Sequence record: OK040170.1
Reading direction: 5' to 3' (one strand)
DNA length: 64,000 bases
Under the pieces are notes generated by a model, which was given only the letters and a program-made list of their open reading frames with translations, was not told where the DNA came from and ran no database searches. This document shows positions 14,706 to 40,820 of this stretch, piece by piece (positions within the stretch are counted from its first letter, which is position 1; each line of letters begins with the position of its first letter). Position numbers and translations under genes: made by a program.

Positions 14706-16130
14706 ATGAGTAATTTCAGCTTGAGTATCGGCGGCGTAGTCGGGAAGGACAAAGCTGCAGACGCTACAACACCTAAGTTAAACGTAGGGTGTCTGTTCGA
14801 CCACTTCTCTGGTCGTTATACACCAGGTAAACACGGAGAGATGATCCTCAACGGCGGCTTCTCTTATATCAATGCTGTAGTAGGCGAGAACAACCAGTTC
14901 AAATCTACCCTGTCCGATTACTTCATGTTGAAGGCGCAGGAGAACTACTACGCGGCCACCAACAGTTTCTACTACGAGACTGAAGGTTCTAAAGACGTAT
15001 CCGGTCTGATGTACCGTGCGGCTCGCTGCCCACAGATCCAGGCCGAAGGTATGGAAGAGAACGATAAGTTCTTCTTCTCTAACATGCTGAAAATGTCCGG
15101 TAACGCATACTGGGACATTCGTAAGGAATACGGCGACGCTAAGACTGACAAGAAAAACAAAGTCAGTCAGTTGACCACTCCTTTCGTTAACGTGGACGGT
15201 TCATCTATTACGATGTTCCCGCCAACGCTGGAAGAGATCGATAGCTGGTCGATGATGTCTTTTGACGCAATCGAACAGAAGTTCGGTGACGTTGAGATCG
15301 GCCACAAAGACAACAACATGATGTTCATGAACGACGGTCGATACAAGACTCAGATCATGATGCAGATGCCAAGTTTGAACGGCCGCCACTCTATGTTTAC
15401 TTTCATGACCGCACACATCGGTTCTAAAGTGAACATGGATCCCAACTCTCCGCCGTCTAAGATCATGGCTGACCTGGCAGCAGGTAAAGGTCTGAAGAAC
15501 GCCACAGAGAAGTTCACGTTCGTACCAAATAACATGTGGATGGTGCACAAACGTACTCCTCTGACTGACTCTAACCGCATTCCAATCTATGGTCGCGGTG
15601 AGGCTGGGTCTAAGGACGATAAAGACCTGGTGAAAGTATCGTGCATGAACCTGCGCGGTAAGTTCGGTCAATCGGGCGCGCCTTTCGAGCTGATCTTCTC
15701 TCAGACAGAAGGTCTGCAAGAGCACCTCACGCTGCTGCACTATCTGCGCGATACTAACAAATACTGGGGCATGGATTCTAACAACACCAACATGTCGTTG
15801 TTGATCTACCCGGAAGTGAAATTCACCCGTAATGCCGTACGCGATAAAATCGATGAAGACTACAAACTTCGTCGTGCTCTGGAGCTGACCGCTGGTATGT
15901 GCCAGATCAGTAACTTCATGTGGTATCTCGGTCCGCACGTTACTGTGCCGCCTACTGATATCATTGCGAAGGTGAAGGAGCAGGGATACGACATCAACGA
16001 ACTGCTGGAAACTACTCGCGGTTATTGGCAGTTTGAAGAGATCAAGGAAGAGAAGCATTACCTGTCCGCACTTGACCTGATCAATATCGCTGCCGGTACT
16101 TACAAGCCGTATTGGATGAAGAAAAAATAA
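14706..16130 (+). CDS. uvsX: UvsX/RecA-like recombinase (phiKZ gp152-like)
   Basis: Walker A variant GENNQFKST, Walker B-like EEIDSWS, FTFMTAHIG strand; synteny. Confidence 0.85.
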   Translation: MSNFSLSIGGVVGKDKAADATTPKLNVGCLFDHFSGRYTPGKHGEMILNGGFSYINAVVGENNQFKSTLSDYFMLKAQENYYAATNSFYYETEGSKDVSGLMYRAARCPQIQAEGMEENDKFFFSNMLKMSGNAYWDIRKEYGDAKTDKKNKVSQLTTPFVNVDGSSITMFPPTLEEIDSWSMMSFDAIEQKFGDVEIGHKDNNMMFMNDGRYKTQIMMQMPSLNGRHSMFTFMTAHIGSKVNMDPNSPPSKIMADLAAGKGLKNATEKFTFVPNNMWMVHKRTPLTDSNRIPIYGRGEAGSKDDKDLVKVSCMNLRGKFGQSGAPFELIFSQTEGLQEHLTLLHYLRDTNKYWGMDSNNTNMSLLIYPEVKFTRNAVRDKIDEDYKLRRALELTAGMCQISNFMWYLGPHVTVPPTDIIAKVKEQGYDINELLETTRGYWQFEEIKEEKHYLSALDLINIAAGTYKPYWMKKK

Positions 16131-34149: not shown

Positions 34150-37100
34150 ATGAGTAACATTACTTATCCCGAACTCTATCAACGATTCGGTATACGTTCT
34201 ACTTCGGGGTTAACTACCCCGAAACTGTTTAATCTGGAGAACTTCAAACTCCCTCGTGGAGCGATCGTTCACTACCTGCCTCAGTCGGTTTCCGATTTAG
34301 GCCCGGACGATCAGTTCTTCCCGATTATCAATGAACGTCTTCGTCCCTACGTAGACCAGGTTACCGATATGACCTCCCATGAAGGAGCTCCTCGACGTCG
34401 TGGTGCCTTTAACGTAGAGAACCTGAAGCGCCAGTGGCTGATTCGTAATCGTCGCTACAGACGCGTTACAGACATCGCCAGAGCGTTAGACGATCGTCAA
34501 ACTGCAATCGTTGTTAACTACGCTTTGATCCCGATGCAATGGAAATACCAACCGGTCCCAATGGCCCGCTGGTTCCGTTTCCAAAACCTGATGAAGACGT
34601 TCGCTGACCGTGTCAAATATTTCGGTGAACAGTCTAGCCGTCCCCAGTTCCTCTTCCTTACTCTGCCGGATGTATTACCGTCACGTCAATACCTGAACGT
34701 ATCGGTTGAGGCCTACGATGTAATTCAGGATGCCCGTCAGGCTCAGCAAAGTAATCTGCAGAGCCAACAAGGCGATACTATCGCACGGTACTACGATAAC
34801 CTCTATCCGGGTATCATGACTGGCCAGGGTACTGCGTTCTCTAACGAGGCGTTTGATGCCAGTGCGTTAGGTTGGGGCGATGAACCTGCGTTCGAATCCT
34901 TCGATGAATGTTCACTCTCAATGGGTGATGATGATCCGATCGTAGCCGTTGAGTCGATGAACCGTATTCGCCTGGGTTACTTCCAAGATGACGCGTCTCT
35001 GTTCCTTTCTGATCTTTGGAAGTGGATGTCAGAGAACCGCGATGAATCCATCCTGGGTTCCATCCCAAGTAATGCATTGAAGAACCTTAACCTGGTTGTC
35101 ATGCGTAACGGTAAGTTCAGTCTGCTCTCCTTCGATAAACTCGACCAATGGGTTAAGTCTGAAGAGAACGAACGTGGTATCGGTTTCGGTTCAATGTCTC
35201 AGACGATGGATCGCTACTTGCAGAACATCGTAACGACGACTTCGGTATCCGACAAAATCACCGTTGAAGAAGAAGTTGCAGAAACCGGTGAAACGGAAGT
35301 CAGCGACATCAAAGTCCCTGAACCACAACCAGGCGACCCGGATGTAGATGTCAGCGTTGGTGACAAAGGCGAAAGTGACATCGCACGTCTTCGTCGTAGT
35401 GCTCAGCGTGTAACTAAAACTCCTCGTGAGATTTTGGCAACTAAGCGCAGTGAAACGCCAATTCAAAATACCGACGTCACGGCGACCACAAGTTTCCAAC
35501 CCGAGGAAACGACTGTTGTAGTAGACAAGCCTACTCCGGGTAAATCGGAAGAGGAAGTCATCGATACCAACAACCCGTTGATCAAACCGGTTGAAAAACG
35601 TTCCCGTGATCTCCTGAGTAAAGGACTTATCTCGGGTAACGAGTTTAAACGTCACGTACGCCTCGCTAACAGCTTCAAGAGTATCAAAGCACCATTCGGT
35701 GAAGGTACACTGGAAGACTTCATGAAGATCCCTCACGAGCAACTGTGGGACTTTAAAGCGAAAGAGATTCCGGACATCCCTCACGTGGTCGATAAGACCA
35801 TGTTGAAGTCTACCTTACTGAACTACGACCAAGATTACATCAGTAATGTCTTCCAGAAAGATGTTGCAAACATGGTCGTCAGTTTACAGAAGGCAGGTCT
35901 GGCAATTACGGATTATCGCGTCGAGAAGAAATCCGATGCGTTGAACGACCTCTACGACTACACGATTAAAGTCGTGCCGGTCTATGGTAGTCCTTCTACT
36001 ATCCGCTTCCAATTACCGGCAGTGGATAAGAATGGTAAGTATCGCGTGAATGGCACTAAGTACTTCATGCGTAAACTTAAGTTCGATAAACCAATCCGTA
36101 AGATCTCTCCGAGCATCGTGGCGTTGTCTACGTACTACGGTAAACTCTTCGTTGAGCGCTCTTCGCGCGCAAGTGAAGATTTGGGCCATGTCCTCGTTGA
36201 CCTGATCGAAAGGTCTAGTCAGCTCGACGTCCCTACCGTTACCGATTTGGTACTGGGCAATACATTCACGGAAGATCAGGACGTACCGCGCGAATATTCC
36301 GCATTGGCAAAAGAGTTCGTCTCCTTTGTACTGAATGGAATCCTGTTTACATTCGACTACCCTAACCTGGCGAATAACTACACGGAAGACGTCGTAGTGG
36401 CAGCTAAGGCGAAGGGCTGGGTTCCAGTTGGTCGCAAAGGTAAAGAGTTCATCTTCATGAATAATGAAGGTAAGCTCGTCGACGCTAAAGGTAATGTGTT
36501 AGGTTCTATCAACGAGATGTTGGGATTACCTGATGAGAAACTTCCGGTTGAGCAAGTGATCGTTAAGATCATGGGCGAAGAGATTCCGATGGCTGCGATC
36601 CTCATGTATCACATGGGCATCACTAAGTTGATGAACACTCTCCCAGTAAAACCAGAGCGCCGTGTTAAAGGCACTCGCGTCGAACCTGTCCCAGGTACGT
36701 TCGAGTTAGTCTTTGCTGATGAAGTTTGGCGCTTCCCTGTCCACGGTGGTAATAGTAGTCTGATTTGGGCTTCCCTCCAACGTTGGAAGAAATACCTCCG
36801 TAGCTTCTCTGTACAAGAGCTGGACAATCCGGACACCTTTAACCTGCTGTTCGGTATGGCTAACCTGAGTGCGCGTTACGTACGTGAGATCGACAACATC
36901 AATGCGTTGTTCTTAGATCCTATCGCTATTGACGTACTGCGCGATATGAAAGAACCGACCGAGTTGAACGACCTGTTCATCAAGGCAGCTTTCTATCTGG
37001 TGACCGATAACTATCCGAGTGATATTTCCTCAGACGGTTCTCTGTTCCGTGGTTACGAACGTATGCCTGGCGAAGTCTATCGTACTTTGTCCAACGCTTA

Positions 37101-37509
37101 TCGTTCTTACGCCAGTCAGCCTGTTAGTTCCCGTGCAACTATCGATATCCCGCCGTTTGAAGTATTGGCGGCAATCCAACGTGACCCATCCGTCGCCATC
37201 GCTGAGGATTCTAACCCAATCCACAACCTTAAAGAGAAAGAGAACGTAACTTACTCTGGTACAGGCGGTCGGTCTAAACGTGCAATGGTTCGCCGTACTC
37301 GTGCGTTCCATAAATCGGATATCGGTATTCGTGCAGAAGCATCGGTGGATAACGGTGACGTAGGGATTAACACATTCCTTACCGCTAACCCTAACCTGAC
37401 CTCGCTTCGTGGTACAGCAGTTCCAACTGTTGATCCGGATCCGAAGAACGGTGTCGGTAACCTTCTGAGTACGTCAGCGCTCGTAGCTCCATTTGCGACA
37501 TACGACGAT
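34150..37509 (+). CDS. rpoB: Virion RNA polymerase beta subunit N/middle part, exon 1 (phiKZ gp178-like)
   Basis: ATG 34150 with AGGAG RBS; RpoB motifs NPIHNL..K..VT..GTGG, ...APFATYDD; the ORF runs into an in-frame TAG 15 nt inside the intron. Confidence 0.9.
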
Positions 37510-37933
37510 CAATATTTACTTTAGTTCACTAACTGAAGTACGGGTCGCTTCTGGGAGTAACCCCAGTCGAATAACTCTCTTAATTGCGGGAACCCACTAA
37601 AGCCACACTGCTACAACGGAGTTCGAAAGGACAAACGTGAATGCTCTAAAAAGTGTGTGGATGTACAATGGGGAATCGAGTTCGGTAACCAATCCGATCT
37701 TTCGCAGCGAAGCCTCTACCGTATCGTAGATACCACGGGGAACGTTCAACGACTATCGAAACGACATGACACGGATGTGTAGCATGTAACGGAGTAGAGT
37801 AGACCACTCGAGCGAGGGTCGAAATAGAGAGCGCCCTAAAGAATAGGGCGATGATATAGTCTCCTGAACTAGCTAACAGCTAGGGTAGCGGGTAATGCCG
37901 CAGGTGAATTTAGCGAATTCATTGACGACTAGA
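37510..37933 (+). mobile_element. Self-splicing group I intron (IA-like), 424 nt, no internal ORF
   Basis: P element AATTGCGGGAA 37582-37592; Q-like CGCAGC 37703-37708; R GTTCAACGACTAT 37744-37756; S ATGATATAGTCT 37851-37862. P3 CTCTCT/AGAGAG; P7 GACTAT/ATAGTC; P8 CGCCCT/AGGGCG; P2 and P9 hairpins. P1 exon CGAT paired to IGS GTCG with a U-G wobble. Removal restores YDD|PKR (RpoB HDD-ANR). Confidence 0.9.
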
Positions 37934-39085
37934 CCAAAGCGAGTAAGTTTCATCTCTATTCAGCAATCTCACGTTATCGCTTCTAGTGACGCAATGGTTT
38001 CTCCTATCCGTACTGGGTACGAGCAAGTCATGGCTCACCGTGTTGACGATACCTTCGCTACCGCGGCTAAAGGCCCAGGGGTAGTGACCGAGAAAGGCCC
38101 TAACTACATGGTCGTAAAATACGACGATGAGAAATTAGGTGAGGAGCGTATCCAATTAGGTCGTCGCTTCGGTGTGGTAACTGGTCACGTTGTTCCACAC
38201 GCCGTAGTATCTGAACTGGAAGTGGGTAAGCGAGTAGTAGAAGGTGAGATCGTAAGTTACCATCCTGGGTTCTTCCAGCGCGACTGGCGTGACCCGACTC
38301 AGGTGCTGTGGAAGTCAGGTACTCTGGCTAACATCGCACTGATGGAAAACAACTCGACCTTTGAGGATGCGAGTTTGATCTCCGAATCACTCTCTAAACG
38401 TCTGCACACGCCGACTAGCCATACGCGTACTATCTTGGTTAACTTTAACCAGGGTATTCGTAATCTGGTAGCGGTTGGCGAACATGTAGATAATGAAACG
38501 GTTCTCGGCTACATTGAGGATGAGGTTTCTTCTGCGAGTGATTTGTTCGACGAGTCCACTTTGGAAGCATTGAAACGTTTGGGTTCTCCAGCTCCGCGTG
38601 CTAAGTATGTAGGAGATATCGAGAAAATCGAGGTAATCTATTTCGGTGAGAAGGAAGACATGTCTCCTTCATTACGGAAAATTGCGGATTACTACGATAA
38701 CCAACGCGCCAAGCTTTCTAAGGCTTTGGGTGGTACAGAAGCGAAGACTGGGCAGATTTTCACGCCTACGCGATTGGACGGTCTCTCTATTGAGATTGAT
38801 ATGATGGCGATTCGTATCTACATTACCCATGACCGCTCTATGGGTGACGGGGACAAGATCGTGGTGGGTAACCAGAAAAAGTCCGTGGTGTCTGGGGTGT
38901 TCACTGGTAAGTGCCGTACTGTCGGTCCAGTGATTCCTGGCGATAAACCATGGGACGTAGATCTCCAGTTCTCGTACAAGTCTGTAAACGCACGTATCGT
39001 AAACTCCGCGATGATGTCGGGGATGGTTAACATCCTTCTCCAGCACATTGCCACTGCGATGCTGAACGCTTACAACGAAGAGTAG
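37934..39085 (+). CDS. rpoB: Virion RNA polymerase beta subunit, exon 2
   Basis: PKRVSFISIQQSH (ANRALMGANMQRQA equivalent), N-x-EDA-x-LISE, GDKIVVGNQKK (GDKxxGRHGNKG equivalent); spliced product about 1503 aa. Confidence 0.9.
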   Translation, partial: PKRVSFISIQQSHVIASSDAMVSPIRTGYEQVMAHRVDDTFATAAKGPGVVTEKGPNYMVVKYDDEKLGEERIQLGRRFGVVTGHVVPHAVVSELEVGKRVVEGEIVSYHPGFFQRDWRDPTQVLWKSGTLANIALMENNSTFEDASLISESLSKRLHTPTSHTRTILVNFNQGIRNLVAVGEHVDNETVLGYIEDEVSSASDLFDESTLEALKRLGSPAPRAKYVGDIEKIEVIYFGEKEDMSPSLRKIADYYDNQRAKLSKALGGTEAKTGQIFTPTRLDGLSIEIDMMAIRIYITHDRSMGDGDKIVVGNQKKSVVSGVFTGKCRTVGPVIPGDKPWDVDLQFSYKSVNARIVNSAMMSGMVNILLQHIATAMLNAYNEE

Positions 39086-39102
39086 TCAGTAGTTACGTAG
39101 CC

Positions 39103-39135
39103 GCTGGGTAGGGGCCCCTACCCAGCTTACTTTTT
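39103..39135 (+). terminator. Intrinsic terminator (perfect 24-bp palindrome)
   Basis: GCTGGGTAGGGG|CCCCTACCCAGC followed by TTACTTTTT. Confidence 0.8.
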
Positions 39136-39153
39136 GATGGAAGGTTTCAAAAC

Positions 39154-39339
39154 ATGAACGACAATCAGGCAGTTACCGTCCTGTCATTGGCGAATATCCT
39201 CGAGGCTGGGAAGCGTGTACTGAAGAACGCGAAAAGCGAAGACTTCATTATCCCAGAAGGCGCTAACGTTGAGGAAGACTTGGCCGCTGCAATTGCTAGC
39301 GAAGTCCGTAATCAGAAAATTGACCAGGGGATTGCGTAA
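39154..39339 (+). CDS. Small conserved hypothetical/virion protein (61 aa)
   Basis: TAATG coupling to the next gene; SPN3US-like synteny. Confidence 0.65.
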   Translation: MNDNQAVTVLSLANILEAGKRVLKNAKSEDFIIPEGANVEEDLAAAIASEVRNQKIDQGIA

Positions 39340-40820
39340 TGCTCAGTAATAAATCAGTAGAACTGGCTCAGATGATTGTAAGCAACGAATGTGCTTGCGT
39401 AACTCCTCGCCCGAACTCTATCCTGGAAGAAGCTGTCGTTAACTCGGCGCCAGTTCTTCAGACCGAAGGCCCTTCGCTGGAATCCTTCGCCCAAGAAATG
39501 ATCGTTGCCTCAGCGCGTGAAGCTGACGGGTTCGATCTCCACGACGCAGCAATCTCTGACGTCGTTGCTACCGTCGGCCCCGCTCTGGTTCGTCAGATCA
39601 AATATGTACGTGACGTTGTCGTCCCGTTCATTACTGAAACCTCTGCGACCCTGATGGATAAAGTTCAGGAATCTGAACCACTGGAATACGAAATTGTTCC
39701 TGTCGGTATCGGTGACCTGAGCACCCTGCCAGTAGTTGCTGAGCTGTTCGGTAAAATGAACAGTAACGTACCTTTTGCTCGTCTGATCAAAGACGCCCCG
39801 GCTAAGACCGATGCAGAGCTCATCAATGCCCTGCGTACCGGTTTGCCTGAGCTGGACGATGCAATGGCAGCTACCATCGCTAAATACGGCCACAGCCGCA
39901 TTGTGGAAATGTACGAAGCCTTCTTCCGTGGTACCTTTAACCAGGCCAATGACGAAGTCTCTCGCGGCATCTACAACATGATCGTCAAGTCTGGCGACGG
40001 CTACCGTTTCTCTCTGGTTAACCCGGGTATCGTTGACCTGGCCATCGTTGGGTATTTCCTGATCGATAGCTTCATGGACAACGTAATCCCAGGCACCGGC
40101 ATGTCGCTGGATCAGTACAAAGGCGTTATCCAGGGGATGAAACTCTCCATGGGTCAACAGATCCAAAACCTGATCCGTAACTTCACCGACGACGTTAAAC
40201 GTCAGCGTCTGATCATCCGTTGGGCAGACCAGCGCGGTATCGTTACCGATGCGAGCAAAGCGCGTATCCTGGTTAACGAAATCGTTTACACCAATGCCCT
40301 GGCTCAGGATGTTACTCCTGAAATCATCATTGGCGGCATGATGGATCCTCGTGGTGCTAAGATGGACTTGCAGTCTTTCATCACCAACGCACGTTTCTAT
40401 CAAGGTCTGTGGGAACAACTGGATAAGTCTCGCAACGACTTCGTTGAGAAAGGCTTCCAGCTGCGCCTGAAAAACATCATCGCCCCGGTTATCGAACAGA
40501 AACTCCAAGCGCTGCCGAACGATTATCTGCCAGACGGCTACGATCGTACTGCCCGCGTTAAAGCTATCCTCGATAACCTGAACGCAAGTGGCCTGAACGC
40601 TTATGGCGATTGGGACATGGACGGCGTACCTAACCTGTTCTATCTGGTTAAGAACATCGCCACCACCGGTATCTTTAACTTTATCGATACCCGTTCCATC
40701 ATCGATATCATCGAACGCGATATCGAAGAGGGCGAAGAAAAGCCGGAGTACGCAGCTTATCGTGCAGCTGTTATCTACCTGGCTAAATGGCTGGTATCCC
40801 AGTTCGACGTCACCGCGTAA
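39339..40820 (+). CDS. Abundant internal head protein (493 aa)
   Basis: Very biased codon usage; SLE/AQE putative protease sites near the N-terminus; between the beta-N and beta'-C genes. Confidence 0.6.
   Translation: MLSNKSVELAQMIVSNECACVTPRPNSILEEAVVNSAPVLQTEGPSLESFAQEMIVASAREADGFDLHDAAISDVVATVGPALVRQIKYVRDVVVPFITETSATLMDKVQESEPLEYEIVPVGIGDLSTLPVVAELFGKMNSNVPFARLIKDAPAKTDAELINALRTGLPELDDAMAATIAKYGHSRIVEMYEAFFRGTFNQANDEVSRGIYNMIVKSGDGYRFSLVNPGIVDLAIVGYFLIDSFMDNVIPGTGMSLDQYKGVIQGMKLSMGQQIQNLIRNFTDDVKRQRLIIRWADQRGIVTDASKARILVNEIVYTNALAQDVTPEIIIGGMMDPRGAKMDLQSFITNARFYQGLWEQLDKSRNDFVEKGFQLRLKNIIAPVIEQKLQALPNDYLPDGYDRTARVKAILDNLNASGLNAYGDWDMDGVPNLFYLVKNIATTGIFNFIDTRSIIDIIERDIEEGEEKPEYAAYRAAVIYLAKWLVSQFDVTA

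Follow-up and report, generated by a model that had tools for sequence, protein, structure and literature searches.

An omega-A group I intron in the virion RNA polymerase β gene of Serratia phage BUCT660

The gene for the β subunit of the virion RNA polymerase (vRNAP) of Serratia phage BUCT660, a 273-kb phiKZ-like jumbo phage of the genus Moabitevirus, has its active-site motif, DD|PKR, interrupted by a group I intron of 424 nucleotides (nt) that lacks an open reading frame (ORF) and ends in A. The intron occupies positions 37510-37933 of the window, the whole 64,000-nt stretch of sequence record OK040170.1 analysed here, which is a 100% match to BUCT660, and all positions below refer to that stretch. 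The terminal G of group I introns (omega-G) is held to be essentially invariant, as the same pocket binds first the cofactor G and then the last base of the intron. Ligation of the two exons at the terminal A37933 is nevertheless the likely outcome in this phage, probably at reduced efficiency.

The boundaries of the intron were established by comparison with an empty site. The sister phage Moabite, whose exons are 98.7% identical, has no intron; its gene reads TAT GAC GAT CCG AAG CGT (YDD|PKR) and is shorter than the allele in the window by exactly 424 nt, which places the intron at 37510-37933 and makes A37933 its last base. In BUCT660, exon 1 ends ...GAC GAT on a codon boundary at 37509, CCA AAG CGA from 37934 opens exon 2 in frame, and the intron itself runs from C37510 to a 3′ end reading ...GACUAGA at 37933. 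The sole alternative that leaves the spliced sequence unchanged is a slide of 1 nt, since C37510 and C37934 are the same base, and it would give a terminal C and lose the U·G wobble at the 5′ splice site. A shift of one base in the opposite direction, with the 5′ site after A37508 and the 3′ site after G37932, would yield the protein YDE-PKR and set the 5′ site at an A-U pair. The initial annotation of this DNA had proposed, from the letters alone, that the intron ends in A and that an in-frame DD|PKR join needs A37933 as the final intron base; the empty site in Moabite and its 424-nt difference bear out both. A degenerate junction-pattern search of IMG/VR for intron-less alleles returned none.

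The residues on either side of the junction form a motif that is kept whole elsewhere. DDPKR is unbroken in Moabite, phiKZ gp178, FBKp24-like Klebsiella phages and a metagenome contig, and none of them has the extra residues between DD and PKR that, as the initial annotation had pointed out, would have indicated a different splice site. A PDB sequence search gave a weak match to Thermus RNA polymerase β (E 0.004) that aligns a DD-x-x-R motif, and in this weak match HDDANR of the Thermus thermophilus subunit aligns with DDPKR without a gap; a Pfam search of the β pieces and of the Moabite protein found no family. The spliced β product is predicted to have about 1507 amino acids (aa). GenBank lists the gene as two adjacent coding sequences (CDSs), both named virion-associated RNA polymerase subunit beta, at 34150-37524 and 37895-39085 of the window, with the intron unannotated, and the BUCT660 genome announcement makes no mention of an intron.

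Related phages carry introns at the very same site, and these provide the standard against which the 3′ end of the BUCT660 intron can be read. Those of Kodama and Totoro hold an HNH ORF of 413 aa in the P1 loop, those of 2050HW, ParM-25 and Haymo a 328-aa endonuclease, and that of 201phi2-1 (gp273/274) has 336 nt, no ORF and an annotation as a join; the others are in PhiPA3 (gp210), in EL (between gp186 and gp187) and in one metagenomic lineage represented by two loci (L018 and L019). In all nine, G stands directly before the first codon of exon 2 and cleavage follows the U of GAU. The sisters share the P7 sequence ACGACUA, the P7.1/P7.2 insertion, a J8/7-P7′ segment reading GAUAUAGUCU, three P9 hairpins and a tail of 11-12 nt that starts with UGA. 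In BUCT660 the tail matches theirs in length and in its UGA start, and A37933 aligns with the terminal G of the sisters.

The pairing that positions the 3′ splice site follows the same rule across the family. The second and third nucleotides of J7/9 pair with the bases one and two positions before omega, as G-C/A-U in 2050HW and PhiPA3 and as G-C/U-A in 201phi2-1, L018 and EL. In the same register, the P9.0 of BUCT660 consists of C37864-G37932, U37865-A37931 and G37866·U37930, pairs that require omega to be 37933; were G37932 the terminal base, the family register would contain none, and G37927 is supported neither by P9.0 nor by P10. P10 itself comprises two G-C pairs, C37934-G37543 and C37935-G37542. 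P9.0 and P10 together mark A37933, rather than G37932 or G37927, as the last base before the 3′ splice site. At the other end of the intron, P1 folds with the pairs C37506-G37547, G37507-C37546 and A37508-U37545 next to the wobble U37509·G37544.

The guanosine-binding site is the same as in the introns that end in G. The BUCT660 intron shares with its G-ending sisters the guanosine-binding pair (G37751-C37861), the bulged nucleotide (C37750) and the pairing of A37749 with U37862, in a region laid out like the Tetrahymena pocket, a base triple on the P7 G-C pair with P9.0 adjoining (PMC10020454). Most of this architecture had been anticipated by the initial annotation: the 5′ splice site at the U37509·G wobble, the pairing of the exon CC with the GG located 5′ of the wobble G and the intact G-C pair of P7 all hold. 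Its P9.0 pair with G37932 exists as well, but the partner in the sister register is C37864 and not C37863. The positions of all elements are collected in Table 1.

Table 1. Elements of the BUCT660 intron and its exons, with positions in the window and the basis of each assignment
Element	Positions	Strand	Basis
Exon 1, vRNAP β gene (phiKZ gp178 homologue), ends ...ATYDD	34150-37509	+	annotated CDS, ORF listing, colinear with the uninterrupted Moabite gene
P1 5′ strand with 5′ splice site after U37509 (U·G wobble, G37544)	37506-37510	+	fold; cmscan alignment
P1 extension hairpin; place of the HNH ORF in Kodama and Totoro	37517-37540	+	fold; Kodama alignment
Internal guide sequence GGGUCG, with G37544 in the wobble and G37542 and G37543 in P10 (partner exon 2)	37542-37547	+	fold; sequence
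P2 hairpin	37551-37566	+	fold
P3 5′ strand CUCUC, partner 37827-37831	37575-37579	+	alignment
P4-P6 domain, long peripheral hairpins	37585-37745	+	cmscan; fold
P7 5′ strand ACGACUA	37749-37755	+	sequence against Tetrahymena P7 layout (PMC10020454)
P7.1/P7.2 insertion, 67 nt, subgroup IA-like, 77% identical to Totoro β′ intron	37756-37822	+	fold; blastn
P3 3′ strand GAGAG	37827-37831	+	alignment
P8 hairpin	37832-37850	+	fold
P7 3′ strand UAGUCU, J8/7 consensus GAUAUA just before	37857-37862	+	cmscan; alignments
J7/9 strand of P9.0 (C, U, G), partners 37932, 37931, 37930	37864-37866	+	register table, ten introns and phage EL
P9, P9.1 and P9.2 hairpins (37869-37883, 37888-37901, 37903-37923)	37869-37923	+	fold
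3′ tail GACGACUAG; final three bases are the P9.0 strand	37924-37932	+	sequence; tail comparison
Terminal intron nucleotide (omega), A	37933-37933	+	empty-site comparison; same in six sequences; G in the aligned sister introns
Exon 2, first residues PKRVSFISIQQ; C37934 and C37935 in P10	37934-39085	+	ORF listing, Moabite comparison, annotation

The P7.1/P7.2 insertion folds into two hairpins between P7 and the 3′ strand of P3, an architecture that the sisters share, and by eye rather than by a classifier the BUCT660 intron belongs to subgroup IA (IA2-like). Of the sequence and pairing features typical of the group I family (RF00028), omega-G is the one that the intron lacks, as the empty-site comparison gives A37933. 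The intron is a variant that stays within the family by descent and by its core, omega-G being a near-universal feature of the mechanism and not the basis of homology.

An Rfam scan of the whole window at the gathering threshold, which is 50 bits for RF00028, gave no match, and the E-value mode was needed to see the intron: a full-length match (model positions 1-253) at 37500-37883 scores 37.5 bits with an E-value of 5.7e-8. The Kodama intron (L003:2775-3146), at 46.4 bits, also falls under the cut-off, while the other sisters score 58-87. Since the Kodama intron has a terminal G and an intact HNH gene, the low score of the BUCT660 intron is not a sign of decay. The long peripheral insertions of the two introns are the probable cause of their low scores, and default Rfam scans under-call introns in these phages.

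A mechanism can be proposed in which an ORF-less IA-type ribozyme, a member of a family fixed at one site of the phiKZ-like vRNAP β gene just after two catalytic aspartates, would carry out a canonical first step and an unusual second one. In the first step, exogenous G bound at G37751-C37861 would attack after U37509, which is held by the U·G wobble. P9.0 (37864-37866 with 37930-37932) and P10 would then position the 3′ splice site, and the 5′ exon would attack the bond after A37933 to restore ...YDD-PKR.... The terminal A would most simply have arisen by a G-to-A change that the G-binding pocket has not compensated. We infer that ligation is slower than in the sisters and yet sufficient for an essential gene. 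The carriers are viable, as two phages from different continents and four read-archive assemblies hold the identical intron. The persistence of the allele might be explained if an occupied site is a destroyed target for the HNH endonucleases of rival introns.

Several observations weigh against ligation at A37933. Nothing in the G-binding pair, a standard G-C, makes up for the A, and work on Tetrahymena (Price and Cech 1988; Michel et al. 1989; Been and Perrotta 1991) reportedly found that a terminal G-to-A change strongly impairs ligation when the G site is wild type. Two G residues lie close upstream, G37932 at a distance of one base and G37927 at six, and could compete as 3′ sites, and an in-frame ATG at 37895 would permit a separate C-terminal polypeptide. 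Moreover, all six copies of the intron are identical, so the A has no independent evolutionary replication. A fuller version of the proposal can be advanced only tentatively. According to it, the unaltered G-C pocket ligates at a 3′-terminal A for an essential enzyme, perhaps aided by the three-base-pair P9.0, the G-C-rich P10 or a phage or host protein, and the ORF-less intron is kept and recombined among co-infecting jumbo phages as a shield against HNH endonucleases.

Two ways around the difficulty of a terminal A were considered and rejected. Conversion of A37933 to inosine by TadA would find the context GACC and not the UACG loop motif, and hydrolysis at the 3′ splice site followed by sealing with an RNA ligase would also need the terminal base docked in the pocket.

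If ligation fails at A altogether, no productive splicing takes place and the gene would be expressed as two polypeptides, one from 34150-37524 ending YDDQYLL and one from 37895-39085 starting MPQVNLANSLTTRPKR, which would assemble non-covalently in the manner of other divided polymerase subunits in these phages; the termini implied are ...ATYDDQYLL and MPQVNLANSLTTR. The two CDSs in GenBank correspond to this arrangement, the in-frame ATG at 37895 lies inside the intron and is preceded, about 9 nt away, by a weak AGG, and phiKZ-like RNA polymerases are built from split β and β′ pieces. The break, however, would hit the invariant active-site motif DDPKR, the one aligned to HDDANR, and the ATG sits in the P9.1 hairpin. 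No examined phage is split at this point without a ribozyme, gp186 and gp187 of EL also being parted by a G-ending group I intron. The compensated P3 described below and the intact core argue for a selected ribozyme function, and a first step without ligation would cut the mRNA. Two separate subunits are an improbable outcome.

Ligation after the in-frame G37927, which would create the junction GAU|ACUAGACCA and a tolerated insertion of two residues (DD-TR-PKR), is about equally improbable. It would keep both the U·G wobble and a terminal G. The phiKZ escape mutants D1072A, D1072G and D1072Y, altered in the second Asp, are viable (PMC11620839), so the polymerase loop is not absolutely rigid and may be somewhat tolerant. 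Against this stand the lack of any homologue with extra residues, the failure of C37926 and A37925 to pair with J7/9 in the family register, the exon sequence ACUAG, which forms no P10, and the alignment of the tail with those of the sisters, which puts the terminal position at 37933. The initial annotation had computed this join correctly, as it had the one between U37517 and G37932 (DD-QYL-PKR).

Use of G37932 as the terminal base is less probable still. It adjoins the expected site, and an excision of 424 nt shifted by one base is arithmetically possible; it would mean either a +1 frameshift in a decaying allele or a 5′ site after A37508 that gives YDE-PKR. The frameshift would lead to a stop about 20 codons on in an essential gene, yet plaques form and the allele has spread. 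The 5′ site at A37508 would exchange the U·G wobble for an A-U pair and change a conserved Asp, while the sisters cleave after U, and an omega at 37932 leaves the family register of P9.0 without pairs. The probability that sequencing or assembly has turned a true G into the terminal A is negligible, as BUCT660, Yaphecito and four read sets, each assembled on its own, agree on this base, and three of the read sets have another exon background.

The intron is a mosaic. With its HNH ORF taken out, the Kodama intron shares 95% identity with nucleotides 1-22 and 23-249, while nucleotides 250-424 are divergent; within this 3′ half, the part that spans P7.1 to P8 is 77% like the β′ intron of Totoro and the part from P9 to the tail is unique. 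P3 lies across the mosaic junction and reads CUCUC/GAGAG in BUCT660 as against CUUCC/GGAAG in Kodama and Totoro, a double compensatory change. This compensation argues that selection has acted on the fold of the ribozyme ever since the mosaic arose. A donor of the 3′ half did not emerge. A blastn comparison inside the window found nothing, a search for distant matches among 50,697 phage records recovered the P7-P8 core of other introns but no counterpart of P9-to-tail, and exact-pattern scans of IMG/VR found nothing. BUCT660 has a β′ intron of its own, which was rejected as the donor. A metagenome scan gave four loci, none with the BUCT660 variant of the intron.

The peripheral hairpin of P5 (37618-37640) is the same in BUCT660 and Totoro, whereas in Kodama its place is taken by the form that the β′ introns of Totoro and BUCT660 carry. 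This distribution indicates that modules have been shuffled between introns of both polymerase genes.

The tail of the BUCT660 intron contains a repeat of its own core. Positions 37924-37931 hold ACGACUA, which duplicates the 5′ strand of P7 (37749-37755) exactly. The GACGAC of the tail resembles GACGAU, the end of exon 1 (37504-37509), and might base-pair with the guide sequence; the tails of the sisters have GAAGAU or GAAUAU in its place. The repeat may permit an alternative pairing after splicing, or it may be a trace of the origin of the 3′ half.

The intron allele has spread between phages. The same 424 nt, terminal A included, are present in BUCT660 (China), Yaphecito (USA) and four read-archive assemblies, SRR29074712, SRR29074720, SRR29074721 and SRR18178461, which makes six independent sequences, and three of the four read sets carry them in a different exon background. 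Between the window and Yaphecito there are no differences over 37203-39006, and between the window and SRR29074712 the identity tract extends over 37363-40024, in both cases within flanks that are 1-1.5% divergent. These tracts of 1.8-2.7 kb are centred on the intron, which points to a recent exchange of the intron allele among Moabitevirus lineages by recombination. The intron contains no homing endonuclease, the longest ORF inside 37510-37933 having at most 53 aa. Since it has no endonuclease of its own, it is likely to have been transferred either by general recombination or by repair after a cut made by the endonuclease of a co-infecting phage (trans-homing).

Presence and absence of the intron are polymorphic at one exact site, Moabite being intron-less and the window intron-bearing, and exon sequence is altered around it. 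The window and Moabite differ at 38 exon bases, 8 of them within the 49 nearest the junction (37500-37503 and 37936-37948), and the proteins differ by a single amino acid over 886 compared codons. The exons of Totoro are about 14% different from those of the window near the junction, yet the first 14 nt of exon 2 match perfectly. Such a pattern fits exon co-conversion or selection on the target of an endonuclease.

A comparison with described introns sets the BUCT660 element apart by its last base. Intron gp210 of PhiPA3 interrupts the vRNAP β gene gp211/gp209 (Birkholz et al. 2024, PMC11620839). The introns of PhiPA3 (gp210), 201phi2-1 (gp273/274) and EL (gp186/187) have the same insertion site, a homologous ribozyme architecture and the same P9.0 register as that of BUCT660, but they end in G and it ends in A. 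In addition, the introns of PhiPA3, Kodama, Totoro and 2050HW carry an HNH endonuclease, in contrast to the BUCT660 intron with its lack of an ORF and its unmatched P9-to-tail segment.

A natural terminal A occurs in the ND5-717 group I intron of hexacoral mitochondria, which ligates its exons correctly in vivo (PMC8146996; PMC6545197). It shares the terminal A with the BUCT660 intron and is unrelated to it in sequence. Unlike the phage intron, it is obligatory, vertically inherited and organellar, holds genes inside P8, is believed to need host factors and is back-spliced in some species. According to the title of the report, one of the two self-splicing introns in the 23S rRNA of Coxiella burnetii "lacks the canonical omegaG" (Raghavan et al. 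2007, J Bacteriol 189:6572). That intron, in contrast to the one in BUCT660, is in an rRNA gene of a cellular genome and has no reading frame to restore. In engineered Tetrahymena RNAs (G414A / G264A:C311U), a terminal A reportedly worked only once the G-C pair had become A-U (Been and Perrotta 1991); BUCT660 has a G-binding site of like architecture, but its G-C pair is unchanged. By analogy with the natural introns that lack a terminal G, ligation at A would be possible.

A literature search, in which the Greek letter omega is not searchable, found no description of the BUCT660 intron nor of any phage group I intron without a terminal G. To our knowledge, the only natural non-G exceptions are the coral mitochondrial intron and the Coxiella rRNA intron, both of which are awkward to use in experiments. 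The BUCT660 intron is a practical alternative: it has 424 nt and no ORF, the reading frame reports the exact junction, G-ending relatives from the same site can serve as controls and the phage itself is cultivable. Work on this intron could reveal whether P9.0 and P10, or protein factors, are able to stand in for recognition of the terminal G. The intron is also relevant to the question of how defective or "defensive" introns survive when nucleus-forming phages compete. On the practical side, GenBank lists the gene as two proteins, and the default Rfam threshold misses the intron.

Further introns interrupt polymerase genes of these phages. BUCT660 has a second group I intron outside the window (L026:878-1170; OK040170 ~25.86-26.15 kb), which is compact, has no ORF and scores 58 bits with RF00028. 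It splits the β′ catalytic motif NCDFDG|DMLGG and ends in G, and GenBank lists the pieces as separate "RpoBC" CDSs; Totoro has the same β′ intron with an HNH ORF. The vRNAP β gene of EL is cut by two group I introns (L027:9811-11758 and 14963-15403), and its three pieces are annotated separately. One of these introns carries the HNH gene gp185 and lies between gp184 and gp186, and the other, ORF-less and about 440 nt long, separates gp186 from gp187 at the DD site and has a terminal G.

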